Below are positions 28,701-64,000 of a DNA stretch of 64,000 nt, in pieces. Position 1 is the first letter of the stretch. Each line of letters starts with the position of its first letter. The stretch is from Paragordius varius (lineage: Eukaryota > Animalia > Nematomorpha), in contig OZ176051.1 in the NCBI GenBank assembly GCA_964247055.1, forward strand, positions 3,472,001 to 3,536,000, written 5' to 3'. The position numbers and the translations under genes are program-made. Below the pieces are notes generated by a model that saw only the letters and a list, made by a program, of their open reading frames with translations, did no database searches and was not told the DNA's origin.

Positions 28701-29655
28701 TGGCTGGCAGTATAACACCCTTAAAAAAATTAAAATATTAATTAAAATTTGTTTAAAAATTCAAAAAAGAGCACGACAAAAATTATGAGTGGTGTATTTT
28801 TAGACAATTGTGTCAAAACTTTCATGGTCACATTAATATTTAATATAAATCAAAAGTTTTCATATTTCAACCCGAAAATCGCAAATTTCGAAGACATTAT
28901 GTTCAGAGAAGTTTGATGTATTTAAAAACGAATAATTGTGTATAAATTTAACTTCAAAATTGACACAAATGGGTTGTTACCAAAAAATATACTTCCAAGA
29001 AACAAAATGAAATACTATCGGGTTAAAATCTCGAGACTTTTATATAAAAATGTTAAAAACAATATATAACAAAAAATTTATATAAACTTTTAGAAATCTA
29101 ACTAAATATGAAATATTGACAATTTGTTCTTAAATCGATCTAATGTTACAATCAGAATCATTTTATAACATTTAGTGAAAACAGTAACAAAAAAATAAAA
29201 GTATTCACCTGGCCTAAACCCTGCACAAATCTACAAAACATAAACCCGTAAGCGCTCCAACGAGCAACAAATGGACTTATTAGGGTAAATACAGATGCAA
29301 GCAATATTCCAAAGCCGAGAACACTCTTAGAACCATATTTAAAAGACAAGCAACCACCCGGGATTTGGGTAACAATATATCCGTAAAAAAATGATGCAAG
29401 TATGTAGCCTTGAGTATGAATATCCCAATCAAATTTAATTTGTTTATATCGTTGGTCTAGGAGGCTTTGGTTGTTAATTGTCTAATATTAAATGGCATAT
29501 ACTTGATTATTATCACAGATATGCCTTGAAGAAGTATTATGTACCATTGCCACAATAGCGACGCTAAGATTTGTGCGTATAATATAGGCAATAAAAAGCC
29601 CAAAGAATGATAAAATCACTACAACATTCCTAGAAACAGCAAATGATTTAAACAT
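25776..29655 (-). CDS. SLC17 / anion:cation symporter (sialin/VGLUT/Picot-like) MFS transporter, about 587 aa, 10 exons
   Basis: Exons: 29655-29503 (or 29545), 29481-29209, 28719-28632, 28508-28413, 28147-27999, 27732-27577, 27252-27120, 26999-26721, 26308-26226, 26129-25776 (TAA). Motifs: RTNLSVAIVAM, FDWD..QGYILASFFYGY..TQIPGG, RFVQGLGQG, GWPSIFYVTG, PFWAI, LLSSLP, VNPLDLSP, ISNTFGTLSGII. The true 5' end is uncertain. Confidence 0.9.
27262..27519. mobile_element. TATACCATTT-terminal MITE (SLC17 intron 6)
   Basis: Imperfect TIRs of about 55 bp: ATATACCATTTGTACCTCAAATCACCCTTGAACATTTCAAATTTACTCTAAAAT and its reverse complement at 27465-27519. Confidence 0.7.
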
Positions 29656-29739
29656 TGGGTAGTTTTCAAAACCGCGTGCTTTTAGGGTTTATCCATCTGA
29701 AAAAATGCATGTTCACAAATCATACACACCATTTAAATT

Positions 29740-32239
29740 ATGAAAGAAGGTGAAATATTTGTAAAAAATTTAGATGCTGTTTATAAGTTGAAAAAATGGC
29801 GTGAAGAAAATATAAAAAATAGCAAAGAAGTAGTCGAATTGTTTACTAAAATTATACAACCTGATATCCTAAAGTATGGCAATGAATCATGGTTGATTTA
29901 TGAACAAGTTTTAATAGCGGCATTGGATTGTAAAAATATTGATTTGGCCAAAAAATGCTTTCATGCCCTAGAAAAAAAATTTCCAAAAAGTCTCAGAGTC
30001 GCAAAATTATATGGTTACATTTTAGAATATTACGAAAGGTAAAAGTATTAATAAGTTTTATTATATTCACTTGCATCTTTTATTTAATATAATTTTAATT
30101 ATTACTGATCTGTTATTTGTTTTGAATCTTTTTTATAGGTTCGATGATGCAGAAGAAATTTATGATGCACTTTTGGCTAAAGATCCCTCCAATTCAGTAA
30201 AATTATTATTTTTTAATCAGACAGTTAATCTATAAACGCAAAGTTGCATTACTGAAAGCGAGAAATTCCATACCAGAAGCCATTATTGAATTAAATGCCT
30301 ATTTGAAAATGTAAAATATTATATTATTTTATAATAAACGAGATATTAAACCGAAACCGTGGTTTTCAAAAATAAATATTGTTTGTTTTTTCAATCCAAT
30401 TTTAATTTTGTGGGTTTTGTCTAAATAATTAGATTTTCTGTAAATTAAATGGAACGAAAACCATCACTTTAAAAAACGAAACATATTCCAAATTTTGGTT
30501 AACATATTCGAATCCACTAAATCTAATATTACATACTTTTTAATTGTTAAAGATTTATATATGATCTGGAAGCATGGCATGAATTGTGTGATTTATATCT
30601 CGTTATTTTGGATTACGAGAAAGCAGCCTTTTGTATGGAGGAACTTATTCTTTCCAATTCAAGAAACTACTTTTATCATATGAAATATGCTGAGGTTTTA
30701 TATTTCGTGGTGATTTGAAATTAAATGTATTTTAAATTTTATGTATCTTAAAATTTTTTCATGTTATATAAGAATAATTTTAATACATCGCTTTTAGTAT
30801 TTCCAATGATCAAAGTATATTTTTCACCATAAGCTTGTTTTCACATTTCGCTATATTAATAGTATATATATTAACACTTCGATTTAAATTGGGGTATTTA
30901 AATACCCCAGACTATATTTAAGTCGATATTTTTAAAGACTACTAAAGGAAACGGTATAAATTCAAATTTATACTTCTATCCTAATAAAACTATATAAATA
31001 AGCCGAAATATCTAAATAAAATTTAGTTTTGAAAAAAGTGCCATATCAAGTTACTTGGACCATATTTTTATTTTACAATTGCTAAATATCATGTTTATTT
31101 GATTCTATGGCTAAAATTAAGTTTACTTTTTAATCAAAATCACATTTAACTTTATTATAAACAGCAAATGTGGTAAATTCAGGATTTTTATATCTAAATT
31201 ATGCACACATGTCATGTTGTCTAAATTTTTTAGGGTTTTACATCCTAATAAGTAATTATCAAGATTTCGGCTCATTGTTAGATAAGTGCAAACTTTTGTC
31301 ATGGTCAAACAGGCCTGGTTTTTAACAACCCCAATTTGAATCGCAGGACTGAAATGAATGTATTGTATCTAAGTGATAAGATTATAAATCATTTATCCGA
31401 TATTTAGTTTGAAAAAATTTTAATTATATATTTCACTTGATACTATTGAATAAACTTGCTTGTAATTATCAGTTTAATATTTTATTATAATTAAAATTTC
31501 TTGATTTTAGATTAAATATTCGCAAGGCGGAAATGATAATTTGGAACTTTCACGAAGCCATTATTGTTTTGCATATAAGTTAAATCCTACGAATGCCAGA
31601 TCTCTCTATGGAATCATATTGGTTTTAATTAATTTAATTTTACCAATTGCATTTATCACCTATTTTTTATAACTATACGATTCTTTTTCACCAATAATTT
31701 CATACACTTGGGTTTATAACAAATTATATTGTTTTTTAATTCAACAAAATAATTTTATTAAATGTGTCATTTTAAAATTTCAATATATAATTTAGGTTTC
31801 GAATGCATTGCAGCAATATACAAAGGGTAATATTAAAAAGCACAAAGAAAATCAGATATGCTTTGATTGGGCATCTAACCAATTAAATCAACTCTACGGC
31901 CAACACGTAAGCCATAATAAAAAACTTTAATTATTATGTTTTGATTTTAATTTTGATAATTTTTGGATATAATTTGATTGAATTATACAAGACTATTTTT
32001 TGTTTCAACTGTATATAAGGTATTTGTTTATGAATGCCATGTACGTACAAACAATTTTTGGGGGGTATTGTATAAACATTAATCAATACTTGTTAAGAAT
32101 ATCCACCTAAAATTTTTATTTAATATAAGCCTTAAAAATTTTTATTGTTATACAGAAAAAGCGTACTTCGTCCAAAGAAGATTCTACGCTTAACCTGTTG
32201 GGTCCTATGCTTGCTTCATTGCAATTAAATACTGCTTAG
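29740..32239 (+). CDS. EMC2: ER membrane protein complex subunit 2 (TPR protein), 296 aa, 7 exons
   Basis: Exons: 29740-30038, 30139-30196, 30225-30310, 30553-30694, 31511-31621, 31796-31906, 32156-32239 (TAG). Motifs: KWREEN, WLIYEQVLIAALD, YKRKVALLKA, DLEAWHELCDLY, KAAFCMEELIL, YAEIKYSQGG.DNLELSR. The length matches vertebrate EMC2 (about 297 aa) only if the 28-nt intron is removed. Confidence 0.92.
30875..31375 (-). mobile_element. TTAA piggyBac-like MITE, copy B (EMC2 intron 4)
   Basis: TTAA|CACTTCGATTTAAATTGGGGTA at the left and ...GTATCTAAGTG|ATAA at the right; reverse complement of copy A. Confidence 0.75.
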
Positions 32240-32564
32240 ATAGAACTTAACTGATATAATTATTTATTCATGTTTACTAAATGTGCATTTGATTGTCATA
32301 ATTTGGAGATTATATATGTGTTTATAAAATAATTAATGTAGTAATGAATAAATATGTAAAAAAATTTAGTGTTGATTTTTATGAAAAGGGTTTAATGATA
32401 TAAAAAAATTGATTATGTAAGGTATTACATTATTATGCATTATGTATGGAAACTAACTAGATAAGTAGTAATATAAGTATTGCGTTGTTAAATGCATATG
32501 TTTATATGTAGATAGTTTATAGGTTTAAATAAACATAAAAATCAATTTTTTTATGTCAAAAAAA

Positions 32565-35500
32565 TTAGTAATAGGCAGGTCCTCCTGACCTTAGCGTGCC
32601 ATTGTTTGTTGTACCATTATTGTAATTTGGGATTCCGATATACCCAGCAATTGGCTGAGAAGGGGGTTGTTGGTTACTTATTATACAGTTTTCTAAATTA
32701 CTGTTTGATGTGACACTACACGTGTGATGCTTAAGTTTAACTTGATGAATTTGATCAGATGTCCCAATATTATTACATATACTGCTGCTGTTGTTATAAA
32801 GATTCGTTTCAGATATGTTACATCCGTTGTGTCCCGCGATCGAAGCATTTTGATAAATGTATTGATTGTAATTAGTTAAATTATTTTCTTGACTACCATT
32901 GTATAAAATAGTTGTATTATTCATGTTGTTTAAATTATTTTGTAGTGTTGTCAAATACGTCATATTGTTGGCCCCATTTAGGAGCGAACCAGCTAAAAGG
33001 GTCGGAGTACACCCATTAACACCATTGTAGTAGATTGGGGTTCCTTGATAATTTCCTGACGAATCCACCTCCAAAGGACCCAAGTCTAAAATATGGAAAT
33101 ATAAAGTTTGATTAAAAATTTATTAGACACATCTTTATGTACTTATAATTGTCGGTCCTGCCATGTCCAAACCTGTACCACCACCACTGGTTTGCATAAA
33201 ATTGATGCCATTAAGACTAGATAAGCATTCGATCGGTAAGAGATATGGCTGAGATGCGATTCCTGTATTCTGCGCGGTTGGGGTTACTGGTGAACAATTT
33301 CCCCCATTTTGTGGTATACAACCTAGATCTAGAAAGTTTACATATTAAAAATTCCTTAACAAAAGACAGATTATTGATTAGCGAAAATATGAGCTTCAAA
33401 CATTGGTTAAAAAAATGATATATAAACTATTATACTTTGGACTGCTGTAATAGCTGGGGTATATGTTGAACCATTTATATAAGGATTCGTATTTGTGGCT
33501 ATGAGTTGGTTTGTTAAAGGATTGTACAATACGGTAGGAGATATGCTAAATATGGAAATGTTTGAAAATTATAACAAGTACATTGATTATTATCTAAAGC
33601 GCCACATAAATTTTTAGCTCTTTTTATTATATCACCATGTATATGGATACTTACAGAATTGTTTATTTTTTATTCTTTACAATATATTTATGTACTAACT
33701 TGTTTGATAATCCAATTGTAAATAAATCATAATAATTTAAATTGACAATAAGAATAAAGAATCTGGAAGATATGTAAAATGATTTATAGGGGACCTGGAT
33801 ATAAGGAAATTAATAATAAGTGACGCTTTAATGCAATTATTAGGGGTAGTACCACTAATATATTAATTAACAATTCGAAATCACCTTGGAACGATTCAAA
33901 TTCACCTTAAAATAAAATGTGTAATTTTAAAATTACCTATACTTTTTATATTTTTAAAAAGTTTGAAATTTCGTTATAAGATCAACGCATTTATTTTAGT
34001 CCTTTAATTTTATTAGGGGTAGTTAAATACCCCAGGCTTGCTTAAAATTAAATATTTCAAAAAATATGGAATAAAAAGAAACCATGGCAAAAGTTTGCAC
34101 TTATATAAAATTAATCAACCGAAATAAAATTAAAAATTCATTCAAAAATACTAGATATTTTTTATTAAGAGGCAAAACCCAAAGCTAAATATTTAGCCAC
34201 TATGACATGTGTGCGTAAACTAATTTAATAATGCAAAATATACCACTTTTTCTGTTTATATCAATGTTAAATGTGATTTTAATAAAAAGGAAAATTTAAT
34301 TTAGGCTTTAAATCAAATAAACACGATATTGTATAAAAATGTTTTAAAATATTAAACGTCAAATTAGTTGGATACAGAACTTTTCCAAAAATAAACTTCA
34401 TTTTGATATTTTGGGTTATTTGTTTAATTTTTATTAGAATAGCAGCATAAATTTGATTTGGAACCGTTTCTTTTAGTATTTTATATCAAATATTGCCTGG
34501 GGTATTAAAATACCCCAATTTTATCAAAGTGTTAAATTAATATAAAACTGAAAAAATAATGAAATGCCATAAGAATATATTTCTTTTATTGATGACTTAT
34601 ATTAGCCTGAAAACACATGATTTATTTTAGGGTGAATTGGTATTGTTCATGGGTAAATTTTTTCAAACAATTTTTATATTTAGGTATCACAGAAAAAATT
34701 ATCTTATAACATTCTTGACATTTCTAAACATAAAAATTTTTGACTGTCGAAATTAAACAGATGTTGTATAATAAAATTTGGCCAAAATACTATGATAACA
34801 ATTCTGCTAAAAACTAATATATTTGGCGGTAAAAGTTTAAATGAGGATTTTTACATGTGTTATTATTTAAACACTTAAGGAGAATGGATTTTTTAAAATA
34901 GGAAGCAAAGATTTTGATTTTATATCTGTAAATTTCAAATCGTTCCCCATAGTAAAATATTATCAACAATTTGAAAATGTTAAACAATATATCAAATTTA
35001 ACATTGTAAATGGTGTAATTCAACTTATTGACTTAAAAATATATATTACCACCCAAATTATGTCAAATATATATAGAAAAATAATAAAATTCATACGCGG
35101 TTCCGTTCGGCAAGGCGTAAACTGTCCCAAGAGGAAGATTTAAATCTGTTTAATAGAAGAAATGTTAATTAGTTACCGATTACTTGAACATTTATAAATT
35201 TGTCATGATTGTGACTATTCTTAATATAAGTAGGCAAATGAAATTACAAATTAATGGTTTAATCGAAAAACACAGTGAAATCATTTTAGCCCAGTTTTCT
35301 TTAAAAATTCACACTTTTTACCTATTTTTCTAATGTATCTTATCCAACCCTAATATGTAATAAAAACTATCCACAAATCAACCGTATCTCAATTTTAAAT
35401 AGTTTGCATCTAATCAGTCACAATACATTATATGTGTCTTTTCAATATTATCGAATTCTTACTAAATGGAGATCCTGTTACACCGGTTCCGGGACCACCA

Positions 35501-37102
35501 TTGCTTAACAGATTATTTAGTATCAAAGGATTGGTTATTTGTCCATTTGTACGCGGTTTGGCCCCGATATAAGCGAGATTAACATTGGCTTTCCTTCCAT
35601 CAATGATGGGATTGGGTTCTAGGGTGGCTCTTTCGGCAGCTAATTGTTCTGACATAGTTACCTTTTCAAAAATTAAATCAAAAAAAAATTGCAAATTCCG
35701 ATATAAAAATGGTAATATTGGCATTTGCTGGCTATTTGTTTATGCGAAAACTAAATTAAAACTTGATATATAATATAACGTGACATACATAAAAGTATGT
35801 TCATTTAGTTACTAAATGCTTTGTTTCAAATTTCCTTAATTGACAGTTTATATTAAGGTGGGACGATATTTATTCGAAAATGATACATTAAATTACATTT
35901 AAGTAGTTTTATAGGATTTTAGTTATTGAATTAGCCTCAGATATCGTGCCGTCCATAAAGGGCATAAAAACAATTATAAATTTGGTTATTTCAATATGTC
36001 TTTTCCGTAAATATTACATTTTTTAGAAAAATGACCTGTTATGAAACTATTTAGTTATACTGCAATTTTTTTCCAAATTTATAGAGAATGTATATGTTAG
36101 TTAAATCTTTTCATTATAGGATGTGCAATTAAAATTTTCCTAAATTGGGAGAAATCATCAATACTAATAATGGTTTACTTAATAAAAATTGGATATCCCT
36201 CAAAAAATATTCAACTTTACCTGTTGCTGTTAGAATCATTATTTTAAAATTATAAAGATCTTGAAATATTATACAAGGGCCTCCAAGTATTTCCAGACAT
36301 ATTATAACAAATAGTGATATTATTAAATAAAAGATCTGTAAATGATTATTAGACTTCTGCAGTTGATTTAATGAACTATAGCACCAAATCGATACTGTAT
36401 AAAAACCAGTTATATATTTTTTCGGGAAAAACAAAATTAATAATGGATAAGAAGCAAACGCTTTTTATACATGTAACAAAATTTTATTTGCTATACTTTG
36501 TCCAGCCTAATTATATTTTAAATTAAAATGTCTTATCGCTTAAATGATATGCGCCACTAAATTTATTTTATCTGAAATTAAAGATTTAATGAATTAAAGA
36601 AAATATAATTAATAAAAAACCAAATTAATACTTATCACAGGGACTAAAAAACTCGAAATCTTGGCAAAAAACAGGAATTTTAATAATCATGTAAAATTGA
36701 GTTAAGACGGTCAATAAGCTAGTTTTATATATTTTAGCGTTATTTTTAATATCTCAATTCCGCTGGAAAAAACACAACTGTGAGATGATTTCACAATTTT
36801 TACGTTTCATCGTATATTAATCTAATCAAAATATAAATTTCAAATTTGAATATCAGATTATCGTGCTAAAATGATTAATGTTAGTTGCTCTTTTAAACGC
36901 TTCCTTAAAATTATGGAAAAAAATCGCTAAAACATTTGATTTTTTCGTAACGGTGAATTAACCGAATAATATTTAACTGTTATGGCATGTGCGCTTAGTG
37001 AGGTCATCTCATGATTTTATATATATATATGAATTTATAATATTGGCACTATAATACGTAATATTTACTAAATAAATCATCATCTTTTAAATAAGGATAG
37101 TA

Positions 37103-37147
<45 letters not shown>

Positions 37148-38149
37148 TAGGGTTTGGAATCAAAAATTAAAATAGCCTCTTCCCTAAGGCCTCTGATTAT
37201 TTATGTTTATACGACTTTTCAACAATTATTACAAAATATAAATATTATAGTATAAAAAACAAATTACATTTCATAGATAAATATATAAAAAGCGAAAAAA
37301 TCTTACAAATCCATAACCACGTGATTTTCCAGTTTGTCGATCAGTTATAACTACAGCTTCTTCGATTTCACCAAAAACTTCAAAGAATTTGCGTAATGAA
37401 TCATCCGTGGTGTGATACGGTAAACCACCCACAAATATTTTAGTGAAAGTTGTATCCTTTTGACATATTTGATTTGATAATGGTACATAGGTTGAAACTA
37501 AATCTCCATTGCTTAAATCCCTATATTTTCTTTCATCCAATGTTATATTCTCTTCTGTACTCTCTGTTTGTTCCAAGGAATGGGTATACGAGCTGTCTAG
37601 GTCATGAGCCGATTTGTTATTATTATATTCTAAATTTTGTTTCACAAATACAATATTTGAAGTGGTGTCCATTGGTCTGTCAGTATTTGAGTCGGAAAAT
37701 GATGTATACATTTCATTTTCATTATTTAGGATGGTGGTAAATCCATTTTCGCTAAGAAGGGAATTAACTGAATCGTTTGTTTGACATGACTGTAATTGTG
37801 GTTGATTCCCACCGATTTCCAAAGAGGTAGATGGAGTTGAAATTTTTTGCAAAACATTATTTTCCAACATATTTGCATTTTCTTGATATTTTGGCGTAGT
37901 GGAAGCTATAGATGTAGTAGTTTCAATATTTATGTGAAGAACACCACCGTTTATATTATTGTTATCTTGTTTAACATTAAGATTGTATTCGTCCAAATTT
38001 TGATTTGTAAAATTGATAATCGAATTATTCCCATCACTCGGAATATTATTATTATTATTATTATTATATGTTTCGCAACCAACACCGTTATTGCCAGCGA
38101 TCAAATTTAAACTGTTATTTAAGGCATCTGTGTGTTTTTTGCAAAGCAT
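32565..38149 (-). CDS. RBM24: RBM24/RBM38 (SUP-12/SEB4) single-RRM RNA-binding protein with long Asn-rich extensions, about 635 aa, 6 exons
   Basis: Exons: 38149-37307, 35661-35463, 35145-35097, 33545-33436, 33328-33143, 33085-32565. The [53 protein letters not shown]|VTM...[22 protein letters not shown] is the RBM24/38 signature. The C-terminal exons are supported by phase consistency (1,2,1,1) only, not by homology. Confidence 0.88.
33975..34531 (+). mobile_element. TTAA piggyBac-like MITE, copy C (RBM24 intron 3)
   Basis: Colinear with copy A (GGGGTAGTTAAATACCCCAGGC, AACCATGGCAAAAGTTTGCACTT). The right end AAGTG|TTAA is intact; the left end is degenerate. Confidence 0.65.
37105..37144. 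repeat. (TA)n microsatellite, about 20 units
   Basis: Read directly; in RBM24 intron 1. Confidence 0.97.
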
Positions 38150-40590: not shown

Positions 40591-43370
40591 TTATTGTGTA
40601 TCATCGGCTAATCCGCAAGTAACTTTGGAAAAGTCAAAAGGAGAGCCTGTAACACTTTCATAAATTTTTAGGACATCATCACACGTTGATTCGAAATGGC
40701 TTGTGGCATCATAACTTTTACTAATATAAATCTATCGAAAGGAATGTATAAATAAAATATCGATTTAAAATTAATTGCTTTTCCTACCCTAAGGCCAAAT
40801 TTAATTGTTAAAAACTATGTAAAAACATAAAAACAAATATTTTTTCCAAAAGACCACTGTACTTTCTTAAACTTGATTTTTTAAATACCTCATTGTCATA
40901 AATTGCAGTGTTAGAAATAGAGAATTAGCACAAGCTTGCAATTAATAAAGTTTAAAAAAGTTTATATATATATGTTTGTATACTTTCATTTTTACGTAAT
41001 AAAATAAAAAAAATTTTATTAACGACGCTAAGCGTAAAATTTTATGAAAATATTACAAAATTTGCGAATATATTTATTACGTGATTTTCTTTGCCATCAT
41101 TGATTGGGACATAGTATGGGGAAACATCGATAAAACGAGCAGAGACAGGAGGCAAAAGCTCAAGACCAGCCATGATTTCATGTAAAGCTTGCTCGGGTGT
41201 TGGTTTTGTTCCCAAGGGAGCTTGAGATTGCGTTGAAACAGTAGCCACATACCAACCCTGGGCCGCTATACAATGCTCATAGGATACGAAAGACACGTAA
41301 ACATCTACAACAAACAAAATAACATATATATATTCATTTTAATCTAATCTCAAAATAAAAGTAACCCAAAAAAGTCATGTGGTTAACTTTCAAAAGTTTA
41401 TAATAAATATTTAATTTATTGGAAATATTTTTCACAAGTGTACCAAAGTTTCGCTTAGCTTGAGCAAATGGTATTATAATTTGGCATGATTTGGAGTTAT
41501 CCGTGTTTGGAATGGGTTGATTAATAAAGCAAATACATCGTATAATCTGCAATCATGTAAATAAACGAATGATTTTAAAATTTATAAGCATATAAATTCA
41601 CTTATGTTTAATGTTAAATTGATTTTAAACCTAGTTGTACTAGCCAAGTTAAATTGTAAAAAAGTCCCATAAATTCTAATGACAATTATATCAATTAATG
41701 CATCAGTAAAGCCTTAGTTTTATAAAAGAAAAATAATGCCAATATATTTATATTTTAGGGTTTGTTAACTTAAAGTTTCTAGCTATTTATATAATTGTGA
41801 ATACCCAGCCATTTTGCTTAACAAGATTGGGGAAATATGAAGGATCCGCAATAATTTTATTGCATCTAGCCAGACCATTCTTGGTTTTTATGCAGTGGGC
41901 TGAATCATCAATATGATGGTTTGTATGACCATTACTTTTTTGATTAGGGGTAGCTTGGCTATTTCCATCCCCTCCCAAATCAATCAAGGCAACTTCATTA
42001 GCGATTTCGTTAGCATCTTTCTTTCTGGGAAAATCTCCACTTTTTCCAAGTTGTAAGACAGGAGTATCCAACATATAAGTTCCACCATACACAGCGCTTA
42101 ACCTGAAATTGTGCATTTACAAAAGTGTTTATAAACACACCTTATTGTATTGTCAATTAAACTCTTAATTTTGTGTTTTATAAACAATATGGTACTTGTG
42201 AAATGATATATATGGATAATATTAGGACTCCATATTCGGAGTTTTGTATCCACGAAGTAATTTCCTCCATAAATTACGATCTTTACATTGTTCTGTGGAA
42301 AGGCTACGTTGATTCAAGTCCATTTTTATATTATCATTATAAGAAAAAAGTGGTCATATATACCATTTGCACTTCAAGAGTGTCCTTGAACATTTCAAGT
42401 TTGTCCTTGAACACTTCAAGTTGGCCTTTGAACACAAGTTGGTTCTTAAAATTTTTAAATTTTAATTTAACCATAATTTTTGCAGGTATATTTTTATTAT
42501 TTTTTAACCTAATTTTCTTTATTTATATTATATTTATTCATTTAAAAATAAAAATCTTTGTTCAAAAACAACTTTTTTGTTTCAAACAAATTTTTTTCCA
42601 ATTTAACAAAATTATTAACTTTTAAATGTTTTCTATGAAAAATTGGTAATAATAACCGAGAAATAATATGTTTTTTAAAAAAATACATATAAAATTTTAT
42701 AAATACCCATAATAAGAAAATAAAGATATACGTTTCTCAAAAATTAAAAGTTGATATTGATATATAATTTATAATAAATAATAGAAAATAGGTAAAACGA
42801 TAAAATAGTTGAATGATTTACGATTCGATTGATAAAAATTAAAAACAAAATAAAAAAGTCAAAGGACCAACTTAAAGTGTTTAAGGACCAACTTGAAATG
42901 TTCAAGGACCAACTTAAAATGTTCAAGGAAACTCCTCAAATGGTATTAAAGTAAAAAAATAAGGTCAAAGTTTATTAGTAAAAGCAGCATTTCCAAAAGA
43001 CAAATATTATATGAATTCTTAAAAGGGTTATATGGGATAAGATATTCTTAATAGCCGTGTTTAACAAGTTAATCATATAGATTCTTTATAATTTTAAGTA
43101 TTTAAAATACAAAAGACTTTAAAAAATTCCCTCTTCTTTATATATTGGGGTTCTCTTCTTTTATAAACTTTTTTCAGTTATATAAACTTTACCAAATATT
43201 AACCTTGCAAAACCTTGAGGCAATTCTCCCAACCCATACAAAGGATAAAGAAAAGGTGATTTTCCATAACACGCTAGCGATTCGCAATACAATCGAATTC
43301 TCATGATTGTTTCAATGGCAGGCTTGGCTTTGTAACTAATGTAATATATATAATTTACTATTCCGGGTAA

Positions 43371-43454
<84 letters not shown>

Positions 43455-44430
43455 ACTAAATAATTAAAAATATTAAATTTGAATACGCATCTTAAATTAG
43501 TTAAATTTTGAGAAAATTTAGCATTATAATCGCCCACAGACACTTTAACCAAAGAAGCCTTTGCTTAGAAAATATTTTAACACTGTTGTATATAAATTAA
43601 GATTTAATTTCACACAGTTCAAAACTAAATTATTCATGAAATAAAACAAACAAGTTTAAAAAATTTAAATAGTTAAGGAATATTATTATGATAAATAAAA
43701 CCTGTCATTAGTCCAAAGGGCCAAAGCATGTCCTGTAAAACTGGCAGTATTATCGTCCAAACTAAATTTTTCAAATAAGGCAGTCATTGGAGTTTGTTGC
43801 ATATTACCAACTTGAACATGATTGTTGGGATCAAATTCGGACACAAAGGTTAAAAACTTTTTAAACCTAAAATTTGAAAAACAAAATTTAAAACTCTTAA
43901 TATATTGTTGAGTATAATAAGGCAAATATATTTAAATTATACCTTCGTTTTTCAAAAATACCCATAAGACCAGAACTTAAAGCCTCAACCTCTGAAGCGG
44001 GTACTTTGTAAGTCTTTTTATCCTTCTCAACATAATTTCCATCAACGACTTTAAAATCAAGGTATTTTGTAACACCAGTATGAATCAATAACTTAACTAG
44101 TAATCCTAAATTTTAAAATTAAATTATTTCAATACCCTTTGCCATCAAAAATTTGGGAATCAAATCAACATTCCAATCTTTGCTCTTTCCAAATTTTTCC
44201 AAATTATTTTTTTCTTGTCCAAAATGTTCATAGACCTTACACATTAAATTAAATTTACTTTTTCTAAGGGTAGTGATGTGCTTTCCCCACCATAATAACT
44301 GTTTTTGTCCAAATGCAGAACTTTTTTGCCATCAACTGATAGTAAACCAGATAAAATACATTCCTAAACATTATAAACGATAAACAGTTAATCCAGTTCC
44401 CAATATAACAACATCATAAAACTCATCCAT
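40591..44430 (-). CDS. GDI: Rab GDP-dissociation inhibitor, 491 aa, 10 exons, with introns of 22, 23 and 30 nt
   Basis: Exons: 44430-44386, 44363-44259, 44235-44136, 44105-43943, 43866-43702, 43335-43204, 42102-41805, 41546-41444, 41304-41081, 40731-40591 (TAA). Motifs: [15 protein letters not shown]|[71 protein letters not shown]. Confidence 0.95.
42360..42946. mobile_element. TATACCATTT-family MITE with 21-nt tandem units in both arms (GDI intron 6)
   Basis: Termini ATACCATTTG and CAAATGGTAT. Left arm carries a roughly (ATTTCAAGTTGGTCCTTGAAC)n array of 3-4 units; the right arm carries the inverted array. Confidence 0.6.
43379..43452. repeat. (AT)n microsatellite, about 37 units
   Basis: Read directly; in GDI intron 5. 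Confidence 0.97.
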
Positions 44431-45414
44431 GAGTTAGGTATTTTATTGATTACGGTCTGGCGAAAAAGCGTTTTAGCTTGTGGTACAATTAAAAAAAATA
44501 ATTCAAAAATATTTTAATAAATATTATAAAAGTAAAGATGAAAAATTTTAAACTAGGTTCCAATTTTTCTCATATTTTAAATTCGCGATATAAAACTTTA
44601 ACATATCACGTTTTGAAACGATAGCCTTAATTAAAATAGTCGGCAAAATATCATCCTATTCTAAGAAAAACCTGACACGGTTGCTAAAATATATTTAAAT
44701 TTTAAAATGCCGTTAGTAAAGACCATTTAAGCTTTAATATAATCATTTCTTTATTAATTAATTCATTTGATAAATACACTATTTTTAACCATAATGGAAT
44801 GCTTATCAATTAAACATATACTCATATATCAAGCGTGATATAAATATTATCCAGATAAAAACATTATTAAAGCAAAAGAGCTGAAGCTGTGGTGTGCTTA
44901 TTTGATATCAAAATAAATTAATTTTTTTAATAAAATATGAAATATTTAAATTTTGACAAATGTTGAAGTGTTTTATATAAGAGGCATGTTAACACACTAA
45001 AAATATTACAGGCTAAAATAATTTAAAAACACCTTTTGGACTTTGTATATTATGATGCTGCTGATATCTCTCACTTAAAATTATGGTTTTAAATACTGGT
45101 TTAATTAGTAACACAAAAGACCAAAAGAATCTTGATAAATTATACATTTGTTATAGTAAAATGCATAAAGATTTCTTGGTGTTTTTAGTTTTGAGCCATT
45201 TAAATTTTGTACATTGGGGGCCATGAAAAAATATCTTGATGAAATAAATTTATTCTGATAGAAATATCAGGTATCATGATGCGTTTGGTGTTGGCTTTAC
45301 GAGTGTTATAAGAAAGTTATTTACACTTTTGTGCTAAGTGCTTTACATCAGAAAATAACAAAATATGAGCACATGTTTTGTAATAATTTTTTTTTGATTT
45401 AATCTAAATACTTC

Positions 45415-47834
45415 TAAATCCAACTTTGAAAAGTCTTGTTAAGTTCATATAGAAGGGGATTGGAACAGCAAAGTTGGTAGAGGTAGAGTGGATCAAATAG
45501 TCGGGCCATATGGATTGGGAGAACGAAACGAGGCCGGGGAAGCACTGATCAATTTTTGTCAAGAAAATGAGATGATGATAACCAACACATGGTTTCCACA
45601 ACACAATAGGAGGTTATACACATAGACCTCTCCATGTGGTAAATATAAGAATCAAATTGATTACATATCCTCAAAAATGGAAAAGCTCTATAATCGATAC
45701 CAAAACAAGCAAAAGCAGCGATTGCTCTAGCGATCATGAGCTTCTAATAACCAAAATCAAACTTAAAATAATTAAAAATAAGGATAAACAGATATACAGA
45801 TATGACACTCGGAACATTCCAAATAGTTTTAGAACAGAAACCAAAGATAGATTAGGAAGATTGGACAATGGATGTAGCTCAGAACAATTATGGGGAACGA
45901 TAAAAAATGTTGTTAATGAAGTGGCAAAAGAAAAAGTGCAGAGAGTAAAGAGGAAAGATAACAAATGGATATCAGAAAAGAGTATAGAGATAGCAGAAAA
46001 GAGGAGAAAAGCTAAATCAAGAGGTGATAATAAAATGGTAAAATTATATAACAAAGAATTTCAACGACAAACAAGGAAGGATTACGAAGATTTTCTTAAT
46101 AAACAATGTCTGGAAGTGGAATTAAATAACAAAAAAGGATTAATGCAACCAATGTTCCAGAAACTGAAGCAAATGACTCATAAACCTTTTATATCATCAC
46201 AAAAGATTAAAAAAGAGAATGGCACCATATTGTGCAAACAAACAGAAGTACGAGAAAGATGGAAGGAATACACCCAAAAACTCTATCAGGCTCCTCAAAC
46301 AAAGGTGTTACAATTAAAAGAAGAAGAACGTGATCCAGATATATTAAGAGAGGAGGTTGAATTAGCCTTAAAACAAATTCCTAACAACAAAGCGATGGGA
46401 TTAGACAATATCCCAATAGAGTTCATAAAAGCTATTCCCGTTGAAAAGTTACACCAGTTATGTCAAAAGGTGTGGGAAACATGTGAGTGGCCAAACGATT
46501 GGGCATCATCTGTATATCTCCCAATATATAAAAAAGGAGATGTACTCCAATGCGAGAATTATCGGAACATATCTCTTATTAGCCACGCTAGTAAGGTCTT
46601 ACTAAAAGTAATACAAAACAGAATGCACAGTATCATACAGACAGAAATACCAGAAAATCAAGCCGGATTTATGAAGGGAAAAAGCACAAGAGACCATATC
46701 TCAAACATGAGAAGGATAATGGAAACATCAAAAGAGTTCCAGAAAGAATTATACATGTGTTTTATTGATTACAGACAAGCATTCGATTCAATTAACTATG
46801 ACTCCTTGTGGGAAACATTAAATTTAATAGGGGTATCGTCTCACTTAATAAGATTGATTAGCTCTCTGTATGTAAAACAAAGAGCGATTATTAGAACACC
46901 AGCGGGGGACACAGACGAAATACCAATCTTGAAAGGAGTCACACAAGGGTGTTGCTTATCCCCTTATCTGTTCAAGTGCACAGAAATGATAATGAGGAAG
47001 TTGGATGGTAAAAATATTGGAGTAAGAATAGGAGGGAGAACAATCAATAATTTAAGGTTTGCAGACGATACCACTCTTATAGCTGAAAGTGCAAATGATT
47101 TGAAGGAATTGATTGAAGAGATTCGAAAGGAAAGTTTGAGGTATGGTCTTAGGCTTAATACTAACAAAACCAAAATATTATGTACAGGAAAAAAGCCTAC
47201 AATTATAATAGAAGGAGTAGAAATAGAAATAGTTAAACAGTTAACGTTTTTGGGCGCAATAATTTCAGAGGATGGGTCTTCAACTCCTGACATCAGAAAG
47301 AGAATAGGATGGGGTAGAGAAGCGATGACCAAATTAATAAATATTTGGAAAAACAAAAGCGTAGGAGTTGAAACCAAAAAAAGATTACTCTACTGTTTCG
47401 TTCTCCCGGTCACCACATATGGATGTGAGAGTTGGACTCTCAGAAAAAAGGACAAAGAAAGGCTCATGGCTTTTGAAAGGAGTTGCTGGCGTAGGATGCT
47501 AGGATACACCTGGAAGGATAAAATTAAGAATGAAAATCTAACTACAGAAATAAAACCTAAAACAAACATCATGGAGATAATTCTAAAAAGAAAGTTAACA
47601 TATTTTGGTCATGTCATGCGATCGAATTCTCTGGAGAAAGATACAATGTTTGGGAAGGTAGAAGGGCAAAGGAAACGAGGCCGACCACCGATGAGGTGGT
47701 TGGATATGATAAAAGAAGAGACCAAAATGACACTGAAAGAGCTCAATATAGCGGTTAAAGATAGAAAAAAATGGAAAGAAATAGTTAAAACTATATCCAA
47801 AAAGTCGTTTACGACTTAGGAAAAACCAACCAAC
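45415..47834 (+). mobile_element. 5'-truncated RTE-clade non-LTR retrotransposon (partial AP endonuclease plus reverse transcriptase)
   Basis: The endonuclease remnant GDWNSKVG..YGLGERNEAG..TNTWF..RLYT*TSP..NQIDY has a stop and a frameshift. ORF 45636-47819 contains NYRNISL, ENQAGF, CFIDYRQAFDS, GVTQG..LSPYLF, NNLRFADD, YGCESWT and RGRPPMRWLD. A 3' hairpin AAGTCG-TTTA-CGACTT lies at 47802-47817, followed by a short CAAC tail. The direct repeat CTAAATACTTC at 45404-45414 and 47835-47845 is the TSD. Confidence 0.92.
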
Positions 47835-47969
47835 CTAAATACTTCAGTCCAAAAATTATCACTAAATATATCATAACCTACTTATAAAAGGAAACAATAT
47901 TTTTAAAAAAAATTAATATATGGGCTCCGAAAGTCCCAAATTATTTTCTCTTCTAAATGAGTTAGTTCT

Positions 47970-48391
47970 TTAACATTAAATTATAACACGTCCATTTCAG
48001 GCTTTCGATTCGAATGGGGGTAGTTAGATACCTCAGGTTTTATTAAACACTACAAAAAATTTAAAATGAATTGAAATGGCAAATTGCACTTACCTAACAT
48101 TAATGAACCGAAGTATAAAAAAAATCATTTATTAAGACTTGATATTACCTATCTTAAGGTAACGCCTAAAGGTAAAAATTTGATCAACATGACATGTGTG
48201 CATTAGCTAAATTTGAAAATAATAAATAAACCTCTTTTTCTGTACCCATCAATGTTTGTAATGTAAAAAATAGCTTTAAAATTATATAAACACTATTTGC
48301 AAAAACATTGATAAAAATGGTGTTGAAGTAGTTTGATCTTTTTATTAAAACTTAATTTTAATTAGATAATTCGGCTAATTTATATAATTTA
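47970..48391 (+). mobile_element. TTAA piggyBac-like MITE, copy D, right end lost at the Helitron junction
   Basis: TTCGATTCGAATGGGGGTAGTTAGATACCTCAGG and downstream family motifs (CATGACATGTGT, AAAATGGTGTTGAAGTAGTTTGA) run up to 48391. Confidence 0.6.
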
Positions 48392-50816
48392 CCAGTGTAA
48401 ATCTCGTGCTGCTACCAGCCCGAGGAAGTCATTCGGACTTCCGGGGGGGGGGGGCTATTTGAAAAAAGGGACAATAAAATGATTCACACGTAGATTATTC
48501 GAAACATTAATCAAAAGTGTCAAAACGTTCATACTCATATATTGTTTACTGGTGTAAAGGCCCCAAATTGACGGCTACGGAAAAAACCGCTATACTATAA
48601 TTTTTACTTTTTTGAAAGTAATATTTAATTTTATTTAACTCGTATGGCTTCTTAAGTTATTTTAAAATTGGCTCCAAAGCCACGACATTTTTGTATGGCG
48701 TCTCAGTTTTAAACCGGTAGACCCCTACCCATAGACCTATATGGAAAAAGCACTAAGTTTAATTTTTTGCCTTTATATGGAAAATTGGAATCATCTTTGA
48801 AACCATCGTTTCATAAGTTATTCGAAAAAATACCTCAACACTAAATAATCGTTATTTGATGGCGTATATTTAGGGCATAAAGGCCCCCAAATTAACGGGT
48901 AATAAATAAAGGCCTAACCTTAATTTTTACCTAATTACGGGTAATATTTCGAACTTTAAATGAGCTCATACGGCATAAGTTTTAAATTAATTTTAAAAGA
49001 ACGCATCTATATAGTGGCACAGATTTTGGCGGGTAGCTTCTTACCCAGAGGCATGTATAAAAAAGCGTCGGGCATAATTTTTGTCTTTATATGGGGAATA
49101 TCTGGAATCATAATGTCCATGTGCTCCTTTAAGTTCTTGGAAACATGGCTCCAAGAAAAAATTGTTCTATGGCGGCGATTTTTCAGGCGTAAAACTTTTC
49201 TTAGCGACTCATTGGAATAAACCCCTATACTAAAATATTTTAAGAGGTAAAAATGATTTTAGGTCTATATTGAACTTACATAGTCTCATATGTTTTATGA
49301 AATTTGGCTCCAAAGACATGCTGTATCGATATAAAGACGCATTTTTGCACTATAGTCCCCTCAGAGCCTATTTAACCGCTAGTTTAAAAAATCCGCTCGA
49401 ATTTAATTTTTGCCTTTTTACGGGTAAATTTCAGGCCCTTATAAAACTTATTTGGCCTGATTTCTGAAAATTAACTTCTAAAACACGCAATTTTGATATG
49501 GTGGCGCAATTTTAGGCTGATAGCTCCCTACGCAGAGGCCAATATAAAAAAGACGTTCGATAATATCTTTTGCCTTTATGCTCTTAATAGTTTATGGAAG
49601 AATGGCTTCAAAACCAAATAATAGTTCAATAATAGCGCATTTTTTGGGGCGTAAAGGGCTTAATTAACGGCTAATTTTAAAAACTGCTCGACTTATATTA
49701 TTGTCTTTTTTCGGGTAATATTTTAGACACGGATTGAACTCATATGGCATGATAGGTTTTTTAAAATTTAGCCCCATAGGCACATCGATAAAACGGATCA
49801 GTTTTTAGCGGGTAGCTCCTTACCCGGCACAATATAAAAAAAAACGCACGACTAAAGTTTTTGCCTTTTAACAGGGAATACCTTGAATCCTTATTGAATT
49901 TTTACGGTATCATACCTTGGGCGAAAAATAGATTCAAAAAATTATTTTTGTGGACTTATTTTTAGAAAAAGTGACATTTTACGGAAGAGTGGGTTAAAAA
50001 GGGCCTAAATTAAAAAAGCGAGCCGACTATGTTGGGGGCAATCGAAAAAAAGTAAAAGAAACCGAATGGTCCAACACGTTTTGGAAAATTGTCTCAACAC
50101 GATTTTTGTGGACTTGTTTTCAAAAAAACCCGTTTCTTTACACGGAGTGGGCTCTAACTGGGGGCCTAATTCAAAAAACGGGCGGAGCTAGTGTCGGGCC
50201 ATTCATTAATGATTATATTTTTGTTATTTGGATTTGAATGGGTTTACCGGTTTTCCGGAAACATATCACAAAGCCACACGACGAATCAGTTTTTAGCGGG
50301 TAGCTCCTTACCTAGCAACTATTATCAAAGAAACACTTGACTAAAATTTTTGCCTTTTAACAGGGAATACGTGAAATCCATATTGAATTTTTACGGTCTC
50401 ATACCTAAGGCGAAAAATAGATTTAAAAAAATTATTTTTGTGGACTTTGTTTTTTGAAAAAATGGCATTTTACGGGGGGAGCGGGTAAAAAGAGGGCCTA
50501 AATTAAAAAGCGAAACGAATATGTTCGGCGCTATCGAAAATAAGTAAACAAAAATTATATTTGAAATTGAATGGTCCAACACGTTCCTCAGAAAATTGTC
50601 TCAAAGACACGATTTTTGTGGACTTCCGTTTTCAAAAAAACGCGTTATTCACACGGGGTGGGCCCGAACTGGGGGCCTATTTCAAAAAAGGGCGAAGCTA
50701 TTGTCGGGGCATTCATTAAAGATTATATTTTTTCGAAGTTTGGATTTGAATGGGTCTACCGGTTTTCCGGTACCAGATCACAAAGCCAGCATTTTCCATT
50801 TTTATAAATATATAGA
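48392..50816 (-). mobile_element. Non-autonomous Helitron, copy 2 (2425 bp), with a duplicated 5' module
   Basis: On the minus strand it starts A|TCTATATATTTATAAAAATGG and ends with the hairpin GGAAGTC-CGAAT-GACTTCC, then ...GATTTACACTGG|T (CTRR). About 500 bp of the 5' module is duplicated in tandem (about 49795-50285 and 50285-50790). Confidence 0.85.
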
Positions 50817-51499
50817 TAAAACAATAAATATTAATTACATGTATCAAAAAAATTTATTTAATGTATCATTTATGAAACATATTAATCATTTAGTCAATTG
50901 TAATCACCAGTGATATGGTTGGAATGCAGAAGCCAAAAATAATTCCCCGCAATTTAACTATGGTCTCATTAAGGGCCTCAATAGCATTTTCCGACGAAGA
51001 TTATTTTCAGGTTCTTTTTCGGGAACGAAATCTATTATATATTTCAACATAAATAAAGGGTGGGGATTATTAAAGTATTTACTATCGAATATTTATAACG
51101 AATGTAAAAAATCGATTTTATAAAAAATTTTTTTTAAATTAGTATGCTGGTAAATCAGACGTTTGGCGCTTAATTGAGGTAAGTAGGGGTCGATTGTACA
51201 GAAAAAGTTATTTTTTATTAAGTAAATACCAACGTAACAAATGAGTAAAAAATACAAACATCCAAAATAATGGGATGATTTGTGAGATTTTAAAAGAGTG
51301 TTTATATTATAATTCTTAAATCGGAATCAAAGGAACCGTACTTAAACAATTAAACATTTACGTCGTAAAGCATAAGACTCGGTATTATCTTTTTTAAATT
51401 AAAACCGGTCCGCTTCTTAAAAATTACTTATAGAATTGCTTTTACATAGATGAAATAGTTTATATTTTGTAGTCATATATATATTTTTTATATTTTCAC

Positions 51500-52282
51500 A
51501 TATATAAATTCAACTAACAACGCACATTGGTGAAAATTAAATTTTTTTGCGAAAATTTACATTTCAAATCACATAATTGATATTGATTTAGAAGACCTTT
51601 GGTTGCCACAATCGTAAATACTAAAACATTTACATTATTAAATTTTTCATAGTTACAATGGATAATTACTTGACATCTTGCGTTATATGATTGAAAAAAA
51701 ACGGATTTGTTTGGCAAATTATTTTATCAACTATCAGATTTTATGGATACTGCTTAGCAGGTTTTAAATAATATTTAAGAATGCAGTTTTTCTGAGAAGT
51801 GCTTTTTCAATAGCTTGATTTTCGATTGGCGAATATCTAAATTGCATATTTGATAGTTCATGTGAAGCATAGTAAAATGTCTTTACATTTGCTTTTTTAG
51901 ACGAAGCCACGGTGGAGTTGCATATCAAACAAATACATTTATCATTATTAGTTATAAAAAAAATCTTCTTCCATTCATTTCTAATAACGTGATATTTTAT
52001 TAATTTACCTTATATTTTTAATCATACAAAAATATAAGGTTAGAGGATACCAGCTTCTGTTTTGTTGTTAAATTTAACATCACAAATAATTTAAAGTTCG
52101 AATAAAATACATGTGATTAAATAAATATATTAATGATAAGTTAACTTATTAAATATAAATTTTTGTTAATGAGTAAATTTTTTCAAACACAAAATAAAAC
52201 AATATGAATTTTGTGGAATAAAATTTTTAAAAACTATTTTTTTTCTTTTTTTAAACCGCGGTCGACTGTTTGGCCACCCCTG
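51500..52282 (-). mobile_element. Decayed hAT (Buster/Charlie/SPIN type) transposon 5' remnant
   Basis: A terminal-repeat-like CAGGGGTGGCCAAAC begins at 52282 on the minus strand. Downstream, NEWKKIFF....KCICLICNSTVA..KKANVK resembles the N-terminal BED-like region of SPIN/GTF2IRD2/EPM2AIP1 transposases. Several stops and frameshifts follow; no second end was found. Confidence 0.6.
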
Positions 52283-53441
52283 CTGTATACTTTTATTTGG
52301 TAATAAATTAAAAAATTTGTGCAAGTCAAAAAATATTTGTGAAAGAATTAAAAAAAAACAATAGCTGTAAGATTTTCGTCGCCTTTCACCCACACTTATT
52401 TATTTTTTTATAATAAATATCATAGTTTTCGTTATTGTTTTTTCCATTTTTAACAAATATTTTTTACAACTTGCACAACTTTTTTTATGTTAGTACCAAA
52501 TAAATGTATACACCACTGTAATCATTCCTTATTTGAGCCTGCATACTGATATTGACATTTAAAATTAAAAATTGGCATTGAATAATAATATATCTTGAGA
52601 ATTCTAATTTCCAAAAAGCTCTTTAATTATAAAGTAATGAATTGAATGATTAGTTAATTGATAATTTATAGATTATAAGACCCATGGCGATAGATTAATC
52701 AATGATGTCATTAAACAGTTATAGTGATATCATCCGTTTTGAGTTGTTGTGTTATGTCATTAAATAATAGTGGAATCATCCATATTGGAAGTTATTTCTT
52801 CCATTGCATTGCTATTTCAATTATTAACTATTTGACGACTATATTTCCAATAATTATTGTAACTTGAATTAAAATTGACCCTCGGAAAAATGTATCAATT
52901 TTTGATTGAAACAGAGATTTAGTATTCCAGCTTTCATATGCGAAAATAATACAATTTGTTACGGCATCGTTCATGGTTTTATTAATTTTAGACAGAAAAA
53001 AATAATTCCCAATGGTTTTAAAAAATATTTGGATTAAATGATGTTTTATTTTTCATGTTTATGATTGAGTCCAGGGAAAATCATAAAAAATTAATTCACA
53101 AAATACCAGTTTTGGATTACTTTTATAGGCTAAAATTTTTTAATTAAAAAAAATACATTGTGAAAAAATCAAAATGCGCCTGAGCTGGTCTCCTCTATAT
53201 AGCAAGCTTGTAATAAAACAGTATTTTTAAGTAATTTCAACTTAATTTATATATTCAATTTATACATAAAAAAATTTAAACGATAAATAATTATAGTTTA
53301 CTGGTTAATAAATGCAAAAATAATAAAATCAAATTTATATATACTTAAAATACTACATACATTTAGTATTAATCATTTAATTGACCCAGAGTTGTTTAAA
53401 ATTAACCAACAATCAATAGTTGTTTTACTATAAATATATTT

Positions 53442-54026
53442 TTATACGATTTTTGTTAATATACCCTCGTCGTTTTCGCTAACGATGTTAAGATCTATAT
53501 TTTCTTTTGATGACTTGGGCGGTGGCTTTTGATTATCCATTATCGGTCTGGGAGCAGATTCTAGATCGGGATATACTAATGTTTTGGTCAAAATACGCGT
53601 TGCAAGGGTCTTATTATCCATCATACAAAACAAACAATCTAATAAATAAAAAAAATAATTACCATTTATGTGATTTTTCGGGATTCGCCAAACCATCGGT
53701 ATAGTAAAGGGAAAGCGCACGTTCTTATTCTTTTTCCACCTGTACAATGTAATATTACATAATGTGCATATATTAGGCGGAGCCCATGTCTTTTTATAGT
53801 CAGCTAATTTGTCTTTGAAGTAGGATTCGTACATAGAAATGATGGAGGAGTTGATTGCAAACATACTGGATTTTTTGTGAATTTTTCCACATATATAGCA
53901 GAATCGTTCTCTACTTATTTTACAAAGCCTGGTCCGACCTTTAAAAATTAAAACTAACATACTTTTATTTTGTAGGATATAGGCGGGAACCTCATAACCC
54001 TCCATGTGGTCAGTTTTAAAATGCAC
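53442..54026 (-). CDS. Chapaev3-like (CMC superfamily) transposase N-terminal zinc-finger ORF, no catalytic domain seen
   Basis: FCYICG...YF..KL.D..KTWAP.NIC..C...L..W......PF.IPMVWR.PKNH..DC.FC...YPDLESAPRP matches the Chapaev3-type Cys/His domain as I recall it. The family assignment is from memory and needs a Repbase/Dfam check. Two in-frame 24-nt GT-AG segments interrupt the ORF. Confidence 0.65.
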   Translation of the reverse strand: MHFKTDHMEGYEVPAYILQNKSMLVLIFKGRTRLCKISRERFCYICGKIHKKSSMFAINSSIISMYESYFKDKLADYKKTWAPPNICTLCNITLYRWKKNKNVRFPFTIPMVWRIPKNHINGNYFFYLLDCLFCMMDNKTLATRILTKTLVYPDLESAPRPIMDNQKPPPKSSKENIDLNIVSENDEGILTKIV

Positions 54027-62938: not shown

Positions 62939-63386
62939 TAATTTTCCATTTCAACATTTATTTCTATGCAAAATAATATGTATAAAGCATATTTGAGTTT
63001 CATTTCCAATGCTTTCTTTCAAATATTAAAATTTATAAGATTTTATGTTTACATCCCTCCAAATCAATCAACGGATATAGTCATTAATTTTGAATTTATT
63101 TATACGTTTTTATCTGTGGAGGAATATCCAATCTCATTCAAAAGGTCATTATGTGCAATAATGTTTTTAAGGGTATTTATTTAAATTGAATACCTTTTAA
63201 AAACAATCAATATTTCTTTTTATTGTTTTTATCTATCTATCTATCTTTCTCTATGTATAATGGATATATATTTTTGTATATGCTTTGAAACTTAAATTTA
63301 AATTAACTATTTTTAAAAAAATTATAACATCGTGTAACATTGTGTTGTATCTATAAACCAGCCTTTTAATAAATTCCATACAATTG

Positions 63387-63630
63387 TGATAGCGTAGCTA
63401 GGGGAAGGAAACGAGGCGGATGTACTGTGCACCATAGTTTAAGGGGCGCCGAATTTTAAATTTTTAACTTACTTCAAAAAATAGGTGTTTAAAAGTTATT
63501 ATTTTAAATAATGCATACAACATCACCAGATTATGAGTGGTCCACGGTTTGACATTGATTAATTTTTTTAAAATGCGCAAGGGTTTGCATGGAGGGGGAG
63601 GGGGCGCCAGAAACTCAAGCTATGCCTCTC
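63387..63630. mobile_element. Possible degenerate hAT (Tip100-like) MITE
   Basis: Left GCGTAGCTAGGGG, right AAGCTATGCCTC, with GGGGCGCC motifs near both ends. No clean TSD. Confidence 0.35.
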
Positions 63631-64000
63631 GCGGGTAATGTTAAAATAAAGATGTTTCATACATCAATTAGCAAGTAAGCCCTACATCTTACAACATTAC
63701 ATACAATTTTAGTATGCCATTTAAATTAGAGCTGCTAAATTATCTTACTTCTATACTCAAATAGTATGCATCAATCTAAAAGAAAATTTAAACGTTTTCA
63801 CGCCATTGTTTAAAAATTTTTATACATAGAATTTTATTTTTACAGCTAACGTATTACTAGAGAAGTCGAGTGCAGAAGCATACTTTGGTGATGGAAAGGG
63901 TATATACATACCTTATCCAGAAATTAAGGGGCACCTATTTTTTAAAATTTTTTCAAGATTATGCTTGATTTAACACCAGCAACAAATAGGGGGCGCTGTA

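Follow-up and report, generated by a model that had tools for sequence, protein, structure and literature searches.

Micro-introns sharing a T[TA]TAAT motif in a 64-kb stretch of the Paragordius varius genome

Genes of the window and their shortest introns

A stretch of 64,000 nucleotides (nt) from the nematomorph Paragordius varius (assembly GCA_964247055.1, contig OZ176051.1, positions 3,472,001 to 3,536,000 of the forward strand), which is referred to as the window and whose own numbering is used for all coordinates, carries genes of animal type for Rab GDI, EMC2, a sialin-like SLC17 transporter, an SLC6/SNF transporter, a TRPN-like protein, troponin I and an RBM24/38-like protein. Gene identities were set exon by exon, each exon being searched singly; the SLC17 gene was recognized as that of a sialin-like transporter by its exon matches, and both Ank and Ion_trans domains were matched in the TRPN-like gene. 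The G+C content of the window is 26–32%, in agreement with the 26.93% given for Gordionus montsenyensis in its genome preprint. The genes for Rab GDI, EMC2 and SLC17 contain introns of only 21 to 30 nt, which we call micro-introns and which are the subject of this analysis (Table 1).

The initial annotation had proposed eight short introns, distributed over the Rab GDI, EMC2, SLC17 and TRPN-like genes and a Chapaev-like open reading frame (ORF). Judged by the alignment of the adjoining exons, five of the eight are real, namely introns 1, 2 and 3 of the GDI gene, intron 2 of EMC2 and intron 1 of SLC17 (22, 23, 30, 28 and 21 nt, respectively). They were accepted because the exons become colinear with their Pfam or PDB relatives only once these segments are removed. 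In the GDI gene, exons 1 to 4 cover the consecutive positions 1–15, 16–49, 51–82 and 84–140 of the Pfam GDI profile, exon 1 comprising just 15 residues, so that the GT..AG segments of 22, 23 and 30 nt between them must be spliced out. When the 28 nt of EMC2 intron 2 are removed, residue 121 of human EMC2 (6ww7_B) is the last of exon 2 and residue 122 the first of exon 3; the borders chosen are the sole frame-keeping GT..AG pair, and the exon that follows matches TPR_EMC2 with an E-value of 2e-10. A 24-nt version of the same intron, ending at a more proximal CAG, was ruled out, as it breaks the frame. For SLC17, the sialin matches lie in one frame, with exon 1 corresponding to residues 39–72 (E-value 1.6e-5) and exon 2 to residues 100–180 (E-value 3.7e-20). 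The two exons are parted by 21 nt that include two stop codons, and the intron listed is the only 21-nt frame-keeping pair that eliminates both of them.

The other three proposals did not reach this standard. The two Chapaev-like segments begin and end with GT and AG, as do all five secure introns, and are nevertheless regarded as unproven because the reading stays open whether or not they are removed and there is no relative that would reveal an insertion: the ORF gave no significant Pfam match, no homologue by word search and no second copy in the window. The 30-nt candidate in the TRPN-like gene (4738–4709, minus strand) was rejected as a micro-intron. The 33-residue spacing of the ankyrin repeats fits an acceptor at 4658 instead, and the candidate is more likely the start of an intron of 81 nt. 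Scans of the window for further micro-introns that made no use of a motif turned up open-frame artefacts by the hundreds and did not add a single secure intron. A micro-intron is mimicked in three copies of a dispersed repeat, where a segment GTC...TTTTTTAATTTAG of 19–23 nt has open frames on either side (16672–16694, plus strand; 50498–50516 and 50005–50027, minus strand). The repeat holding this segment also lies around 48.4–50.9 kb and 56.9–58.6 kb; it is open on both strands, and its coding capacity is doubtful.

Forty-nine longer introns of the GDI, EMC2, SLC17, SLC6, troponin I and TRPN genes, set by homology and phase, served as controls. Taken together, the 54 introns of the window measure 21, 22, 23, 28 and 30 nt and then from 54 nt (42 nt with an alternative donor) up to 1204 nt. 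The existence of a discrete class beside ordinary introns, which had been suggested initially, is thus borne out for this window by a gap between 30 nt and at least 54 nt (42 nt if the alternative donor is used). Micro-introns do not make up the bulk of all introns, since they account for 5 of the 54, and the median in the window does not fall below 30 nt. Among the controls, the 71-nt intron of troponin I (62424–62494, plus strand) shows the textbook layout, with CTAAC at −22 and a T run behind it, from which it is evident that conventional 3' architecture is present in the same genome.

A search for sequencing runs containing the GDI stretch returned no RNA run, and three presumed RNA runs labelled with the same species left uncovered the troponin I region (58001–64000), selected because this gene had the best chance of being expressed; as their longest contigs measure 7.7–14.9 kb, it is unlikely that they represent whole-animal RNA-seq deep enough to be of use. 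One DNA run, labelled as another organism, is near-identical to the window over the troponin I region. A word search with GDI exon 4 retrieved just fragments of 54–73% identity, the window's own protein not being among the matches, and a record look-up of one ORF of the window found none. An Rfam scan of the window yielded no RNA family and hence no small nuclear RNA (snRNA) within it, and the window is likewise devoid of genes for U2AF, SF1 and SF3b.

Table 1. Micro-introns, candidate introns and reference genes in the window. Distances of the second A of TAAT are counted from the 5' end (+) and the 3' end (−) of the intron.
Feature	Position	Strand	Length (nt)	Phase	Hexamer: positions in intron (in window)	Second A of TAAT	Remarks
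GDI intron 1	44364–44385	−	22	0	TATAAT: 11–16 (44370–44375)	44371 (+15/−8), candidate branch A	GT..AG
GDI intron 2	44236–44258	−	23	0	TTTAAT: 11–16 (44243–44248)	44244 (+15/−9), candidate branch A	
GDI intron 3	44106–44135	−	30	1	TTTAAT: 13–18 (44118–44123)	44119 (+17/−14), candidate branch A	
EMC2 intron 2	30197–30224	+	28	0	TTTAAT: 16–21 (30212–30217)	30216 (+20/−9), candidate branch A	
SLC17 intron 1	29482–29502	−	21	0	TTTAAT: 11–16 (29487–29492)	29488 (+15/−7), candidate branch A	in frame; contains TAA and TAG
Chapaev-like candidate intron 1	53939–53962	−	24		TTTAAT: 11–16 (53947–53952)	+15/−10	in frame, stop-free; unproven
Chapaev-like candidate intron 2	53639–53662	−	24				in frame, stop-free; TAAT at 5' end only; unproven
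TRPN intron	4658–4738	−	81				30-nt candidate 4709–4738 is its 5' part
Rab GDI gene	41045–44430	−					PF00996; beyond introns 1–3, introns of 76, 366, 1101, 258 and 139 nt (long-intron controls)
Troponin I gene	61111–62937	+					conventional introns only (71–296 nt), taken as controls

The hexamer T[TA]TAAT and its position

In the initial annotation attention had been drawn to a TAAT close upstream of the AG, with its second A as putative branch point. All six positions given there for this A, five of them in the secure introns and one in Chapaev-like candidate 1, proved to be exact, and it was likewise correct that the second Chapaev-like segment lacks the motif near its 3' end. The word held in common is longer than TAAT and reads T[TA]TAAT; GDI intron 1 has it as TATAAT, the other four secure introns as TTTAAT. 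It starts at position 11 in the secure introns of 21, 22 and 23 nt and in the 24-nt candidate, and further downstream in those of 30 and 28 nt. Throughout the 21–24 nt group, Chapaev-like candidate 1 included, the second A is always at +15 but anywhere from −7 to −10 when counted from the 3' end, so that in the smallest introns it is the distance to the AG that sets intron length. The description of a TAAT near the AG therefore holds for all five secure introns and is at the same time incomplete, as the smallest of them keep a constant distance to the 5' end.

Two further statements about these introns withstood inspection. There is indeed no room for a polypyrimidine tract: 4–11 bases lie between motif and AG, and none of these spacers is a pyrimidine tract. 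Donors are weak beyond GT(A/T), being GTA or GTT in both size classes. Downstream of the candidate A, the terminal AG is the first one in every secure intron but EMC2 intron 2, where a CAG (30218–30220) located four bases past the candidate A is skipped and the AG at 30223–30224 is used. Retention of any secure intron other than EMC2 intron 2 would place the TAA of its motif in frame as a stop codon (44371–44373, 44244–44246, 44119–44121 and 29488–29490, all on the minus strand). EMC2 intron 2 has no in-frame stop, and its retention shifts the frame.

Sequence with 80–90% A+T is rich in TAAT and TTTAAT, and five introns might simply happen to share them. For comparison, every GT..AG segment of 21–30 nt whose A+T content reaches 75% was collected as a decoy from the two strands of the window, 535 in all. 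TAAT is present somewhere in 33–54% of the decoys, and five sampled decoys have a 4-mer common to all of them in 29% of resamplings, both of which speak for coincidence. The position of the motif tells against it. The second A of TAAT lies at −14 to −7 in 5/5 micro-introns compared with about 20% (16–28%) of the decoys (resampling p about 5e-4). T[TA]TAAT at any position was found in all five and in 7.5–24% of the decoys, with p about 5e-5 for a motif that was picked post hoc. Within the 21–24 nt class, the hexamer occupies positions 11–16 in 3/3 secure introns and in none of 216 decoys. The long introns give the same result, as only 6 of the 49 have TAAT at −14 to −7 (Fisher p 1.5e-4 against 5/5), which equals the interior background of 12%. 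Approaches blind to the motif are less decisive. The most widely shared 6-mer occurs in four of the five introns (p 0.028), or in five of seven when the candidates are added (p 0.013), and a 4-mer in common 5' register in three of five (p 0.08) or four of seven (p 0.016); the value of 0.08 for the secure introns can be counted in favor of chance. In 3' register no word stands out (p 0.24–0.9). On balance, we consider it unlikely that base composition alone has brought the motif into all five introns.

The long introns are not entirely devoid of the hexamer. T[TA]TAAT with its A at −17 to −6 is present in 8 of the 49, compared with 7% expected, a weak enrichment (p 0.02).

A putative branch site in what are probably ordinary introns close to minimum size

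From the observed introns, their motif, its positions and its excess over the controls we infer that T[TA]TAAT serves as branch site and that it is the normal spliceosome which excises the micro-introns. In our judgement these are probably, though by no means certainly, U2-type GT-AG introns of the ordinary kind, reduced to a length at which neither arm could physically become much shorter, with T(T/A)TAAT as an AT-shifted form of the canonical branch site. Exchange of C for U in UACUAAC gives U-U-A-A-U, in which the U-A pairs and the bulged A are kept and G-U pairs with GUAGUA of U2 are allowed. By this general knowledge of U2, the motif of the micro-introns is predicted to pair with GUAGUA: it would represent UACUAAC (yUnAy) after replacement of C by U in an AT-rich genome, and its second A would be the adenosine that bulges out at the branch. 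In the smallest introns, the arm leading from the 5' splice site to that A would then be 15 nt long. The arm between it and the AG would have 7–10 nt (14 nt in the 30-nt intron), too few to accommodate a polypyrimidine tract. As 3' splice site, the first AG at a sufficient distance from the branch would be used, since an AG too near to it could not reach the active site. Such a rule would explain why EMC2 intron 2 passes over its proximal CAG, and minimal arms of about 15 and about 7 nt would fit the smallest size observed, 21 nt. No special machinery would be needed, because the donors of both classes are alike, long introns show a weak enrichment of the hexamer too, and the published lineages with micro-introns keep U2 and U2AF.

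Several points weigh against this reading. The sample consists of five secure introns, and the motif was picked after they had been inspected; the tests that do not presuppose it reach only p values of about 0.01–0.08. The +15 register is broken in the introns of 28 nt (+20) and 30 nt (+17). A scan of the window with the motif grammar returned 84 fits of which 5–6 are introns, and the motif is therefore insufficient to define an intron, even though the true introns are ranked at the top when the fits are ordered by flanking open frames. Finally, with the motif TAA doubling as an in-frame stop in four of the five introns, selection could act on the stop.

A bolder version of the branch-site reading treats the micro-introns as a fixed two-arm class (15 nt plus 7–10 nt) within a large, repeat-rich genome, with a strong UUUAAU branch site by which they would be recognized in place of a pyrimidine tract, a TAA that doubles as in-frame stop and renders retention harmless, and a separate mode of 3'-end definition alongside that of conventional introns. 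As a whole this combination appears unlikely to us. A lower probability still is assigned to the idea that the conserved part is just TAA, maintained as an in-frame stop so that transcripts with retained introns are truncated or destroyed; it could be combined with a role as branch site. For short introns of Paramecium, such a role of in-frame stops was reportedly proposed by Jaillon and colleagues in 2008. In agreement with this idea, the frame of the preceding exon runs into the motif's TAA in 4/5 cases, where one third would be expected (binomial p about 0.045), and both introns with a length divisible by three (21 and 30 nt) contain such a TAA. The idea leaves unexplained, however, the flanking T residues and the +15 position, stops are frequent anyway in such sequence, EMC2 intron 2 has none, and introns whose length is not a multiple of three shift the frame without one. 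We therefore take selection for a stop alone to be quite improbable.

The initial annotation had gone further and invoked a dedicated short-intron mode of splicing. A separate pathway running beside conventional splicing, for example one independent of U2AF and similar to the SPF45-dependent route in humans, would accord with the clear size gap between 30 and at least 54 nt among the 54 introns, with the missing pyrimidine tract between motif and AG, with a TAAT in the −14 to −7 zone that is universal in micro-introns and at background level in long ones, and with the human precedent itself (10.1101/784868). The two classes do not differ in their donors, however (GTA in four of five micro-introns and in 23 of 31 long introns), long introns have a weak excess of the hexamer as well, and published micro-intron lineages retain normal U2, U2AF1 and U2AF2 (PMC13644364, PMC9505925). 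A dedicated mode is thus not supported, and we rate it as very doubtful. Minor introns of the U12 type, with a /RTATCCTT donor and a TCCTTAAC branch site, were rejected, as no donor or interior fits.

Another word deserves mention in this context. CATGAT occurs in three long introns on the minus strand, with its second A at −7 in GDI intron 7 (41547–41561), −11 in the SLC6 intron s4 (21970–21985) and −18 in SLC17 intron 3 (28509–28531). It may be a second variant of the branch site, URAU.

Relation to other short introns and further features of the window

Introns shorter than 30 nt have been published for two animal groups only, the myxobolid Myxozoa and Dicyema japonicum (Hadjez et al. 2026, PMC13644364). 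The micro-introns described here resemble theirs in being GT-AG introns of at most 30 nt in an animal, with a 5' signal cut down to GTa and without a pyrimidine tract (PMC13644364). In the myxobolids and Dicyema, A residues preceding the AG shift away from it as length grows, and U2 as well as U2AF are conserved (PMC13644364); the same recession of the A from the AG in longer introns is seen here and would imply a branch anchored to the 5' end. In contrast, nearly all introns of these organisms are short (medians of 22–27 nt) and their genomes are compact, whereas here 5 of 54 introns are short, the others reach 1.2 kb, and the genome is repeat-rich. Also, the myxobolid and Dicyema introns have two or three weakly conserved A residues, whereas a defined hexamer is present in every secure case in the window.

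The 15–16 nt introns of Stentor coeruleus also lack a pyrimidine tract; like the candidate A of the window, their branch A is almost fixed in position, and U2 has kept its GUAGUA in that organism (PMC9505925). Their A is at position 10 of 15 or 11 of 16 nt, i.e., fixed at −6 relative to the 3' end and 10 nt from the 5' end (PMC9505925), unlike the situation in Paragordius, where the candidate A resides at +15 and its distance to the AG is variable. With the canonical U2 branch site (UACUAAC/yUnAy) the motif shares the U, the A and the putative bulged A in U-A-A-U, and also the bypass of an AG that is too close (EMC2 intron 2). It differs in the distance from branch to AG, which would be 7–10 nt here compared with about 18–40 nt in most animals. 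The human introns that depend on SPF45/RBM17 are also short, have a truncated pyrimidine tract and are handled differently at their 3' end (10.1101/784868). At 50–60 nt they are longer, however, and their dependence was demonstrated by experiment (10.1101/784868), while the likeness of the introns described here lies in their sequence, which has no pyrimidine tract.

Micro-introns in Nematomorpha are mentioned neither in the Gordionus genome preprint, which reports a BUSCO completeness of 71.6% and nowhere mentions introns, nor in the 2026 survey of 51 animal genomes, the main text of which never names the phylum (PMC13644364). Ultra-short introns in animals as such are already known; what would be new with respect to the literature is their presence, within a large genome, as a discrete minority class characterized by a defined hexamer at the putative branch site. 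Standard gene finders skip introns of this kind, and as they are placed here at the start of housekeeping genes, gene models are truncated or broken where they are missed. Part of the gene loss reported for the phylum could consequently be an artefact of annotation. Once tested, a grammar of GTA, T[TA]TAAT at +11 to +21 and a first AG at least 6 nt later would help to find such introns, and the two arm lengths would gauge the minimum spliceosomal substrate in an animal that still splices introns of kilobase length.

Several minor features were noted in and between the genes. The RBM24/38-like gene (37271–38149, minus strand) has about 230 in-frame codons of Asn-rich low complexity ahead of its RRM domain, and intron 5 of the GDI gene harbors a (TA)n microsatellite of about 70 nt (about 43380–43450). 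Upstream of the 5' end of the GDI gene lies an ORF of 745 codons (45582–47816, plus strand) that matches RVT_1 with an E-value of 1e-35 and is seemingly an intact element of the non-LTR (long terminal repeat) type. Close to the Chapaev-like ORF, an isolated ORF (51767–52009, minus strand) weakly matches the Spin-doc zinc finger (zf-C2H2_12, E-value 3e-5, below the Pfam cut-off) and may be another transposon remnant. The palindromic 18-mer GGGGTATTTAAATACCCC is present five times with at most two mismatches (at 19324, 30891, 34016, 34499 and 55227), where no copy would be expected by chance. One of its copies resides within intron 4 of EMC2, and the 18-mer has the look of a core or terminal part of some small repeat element.

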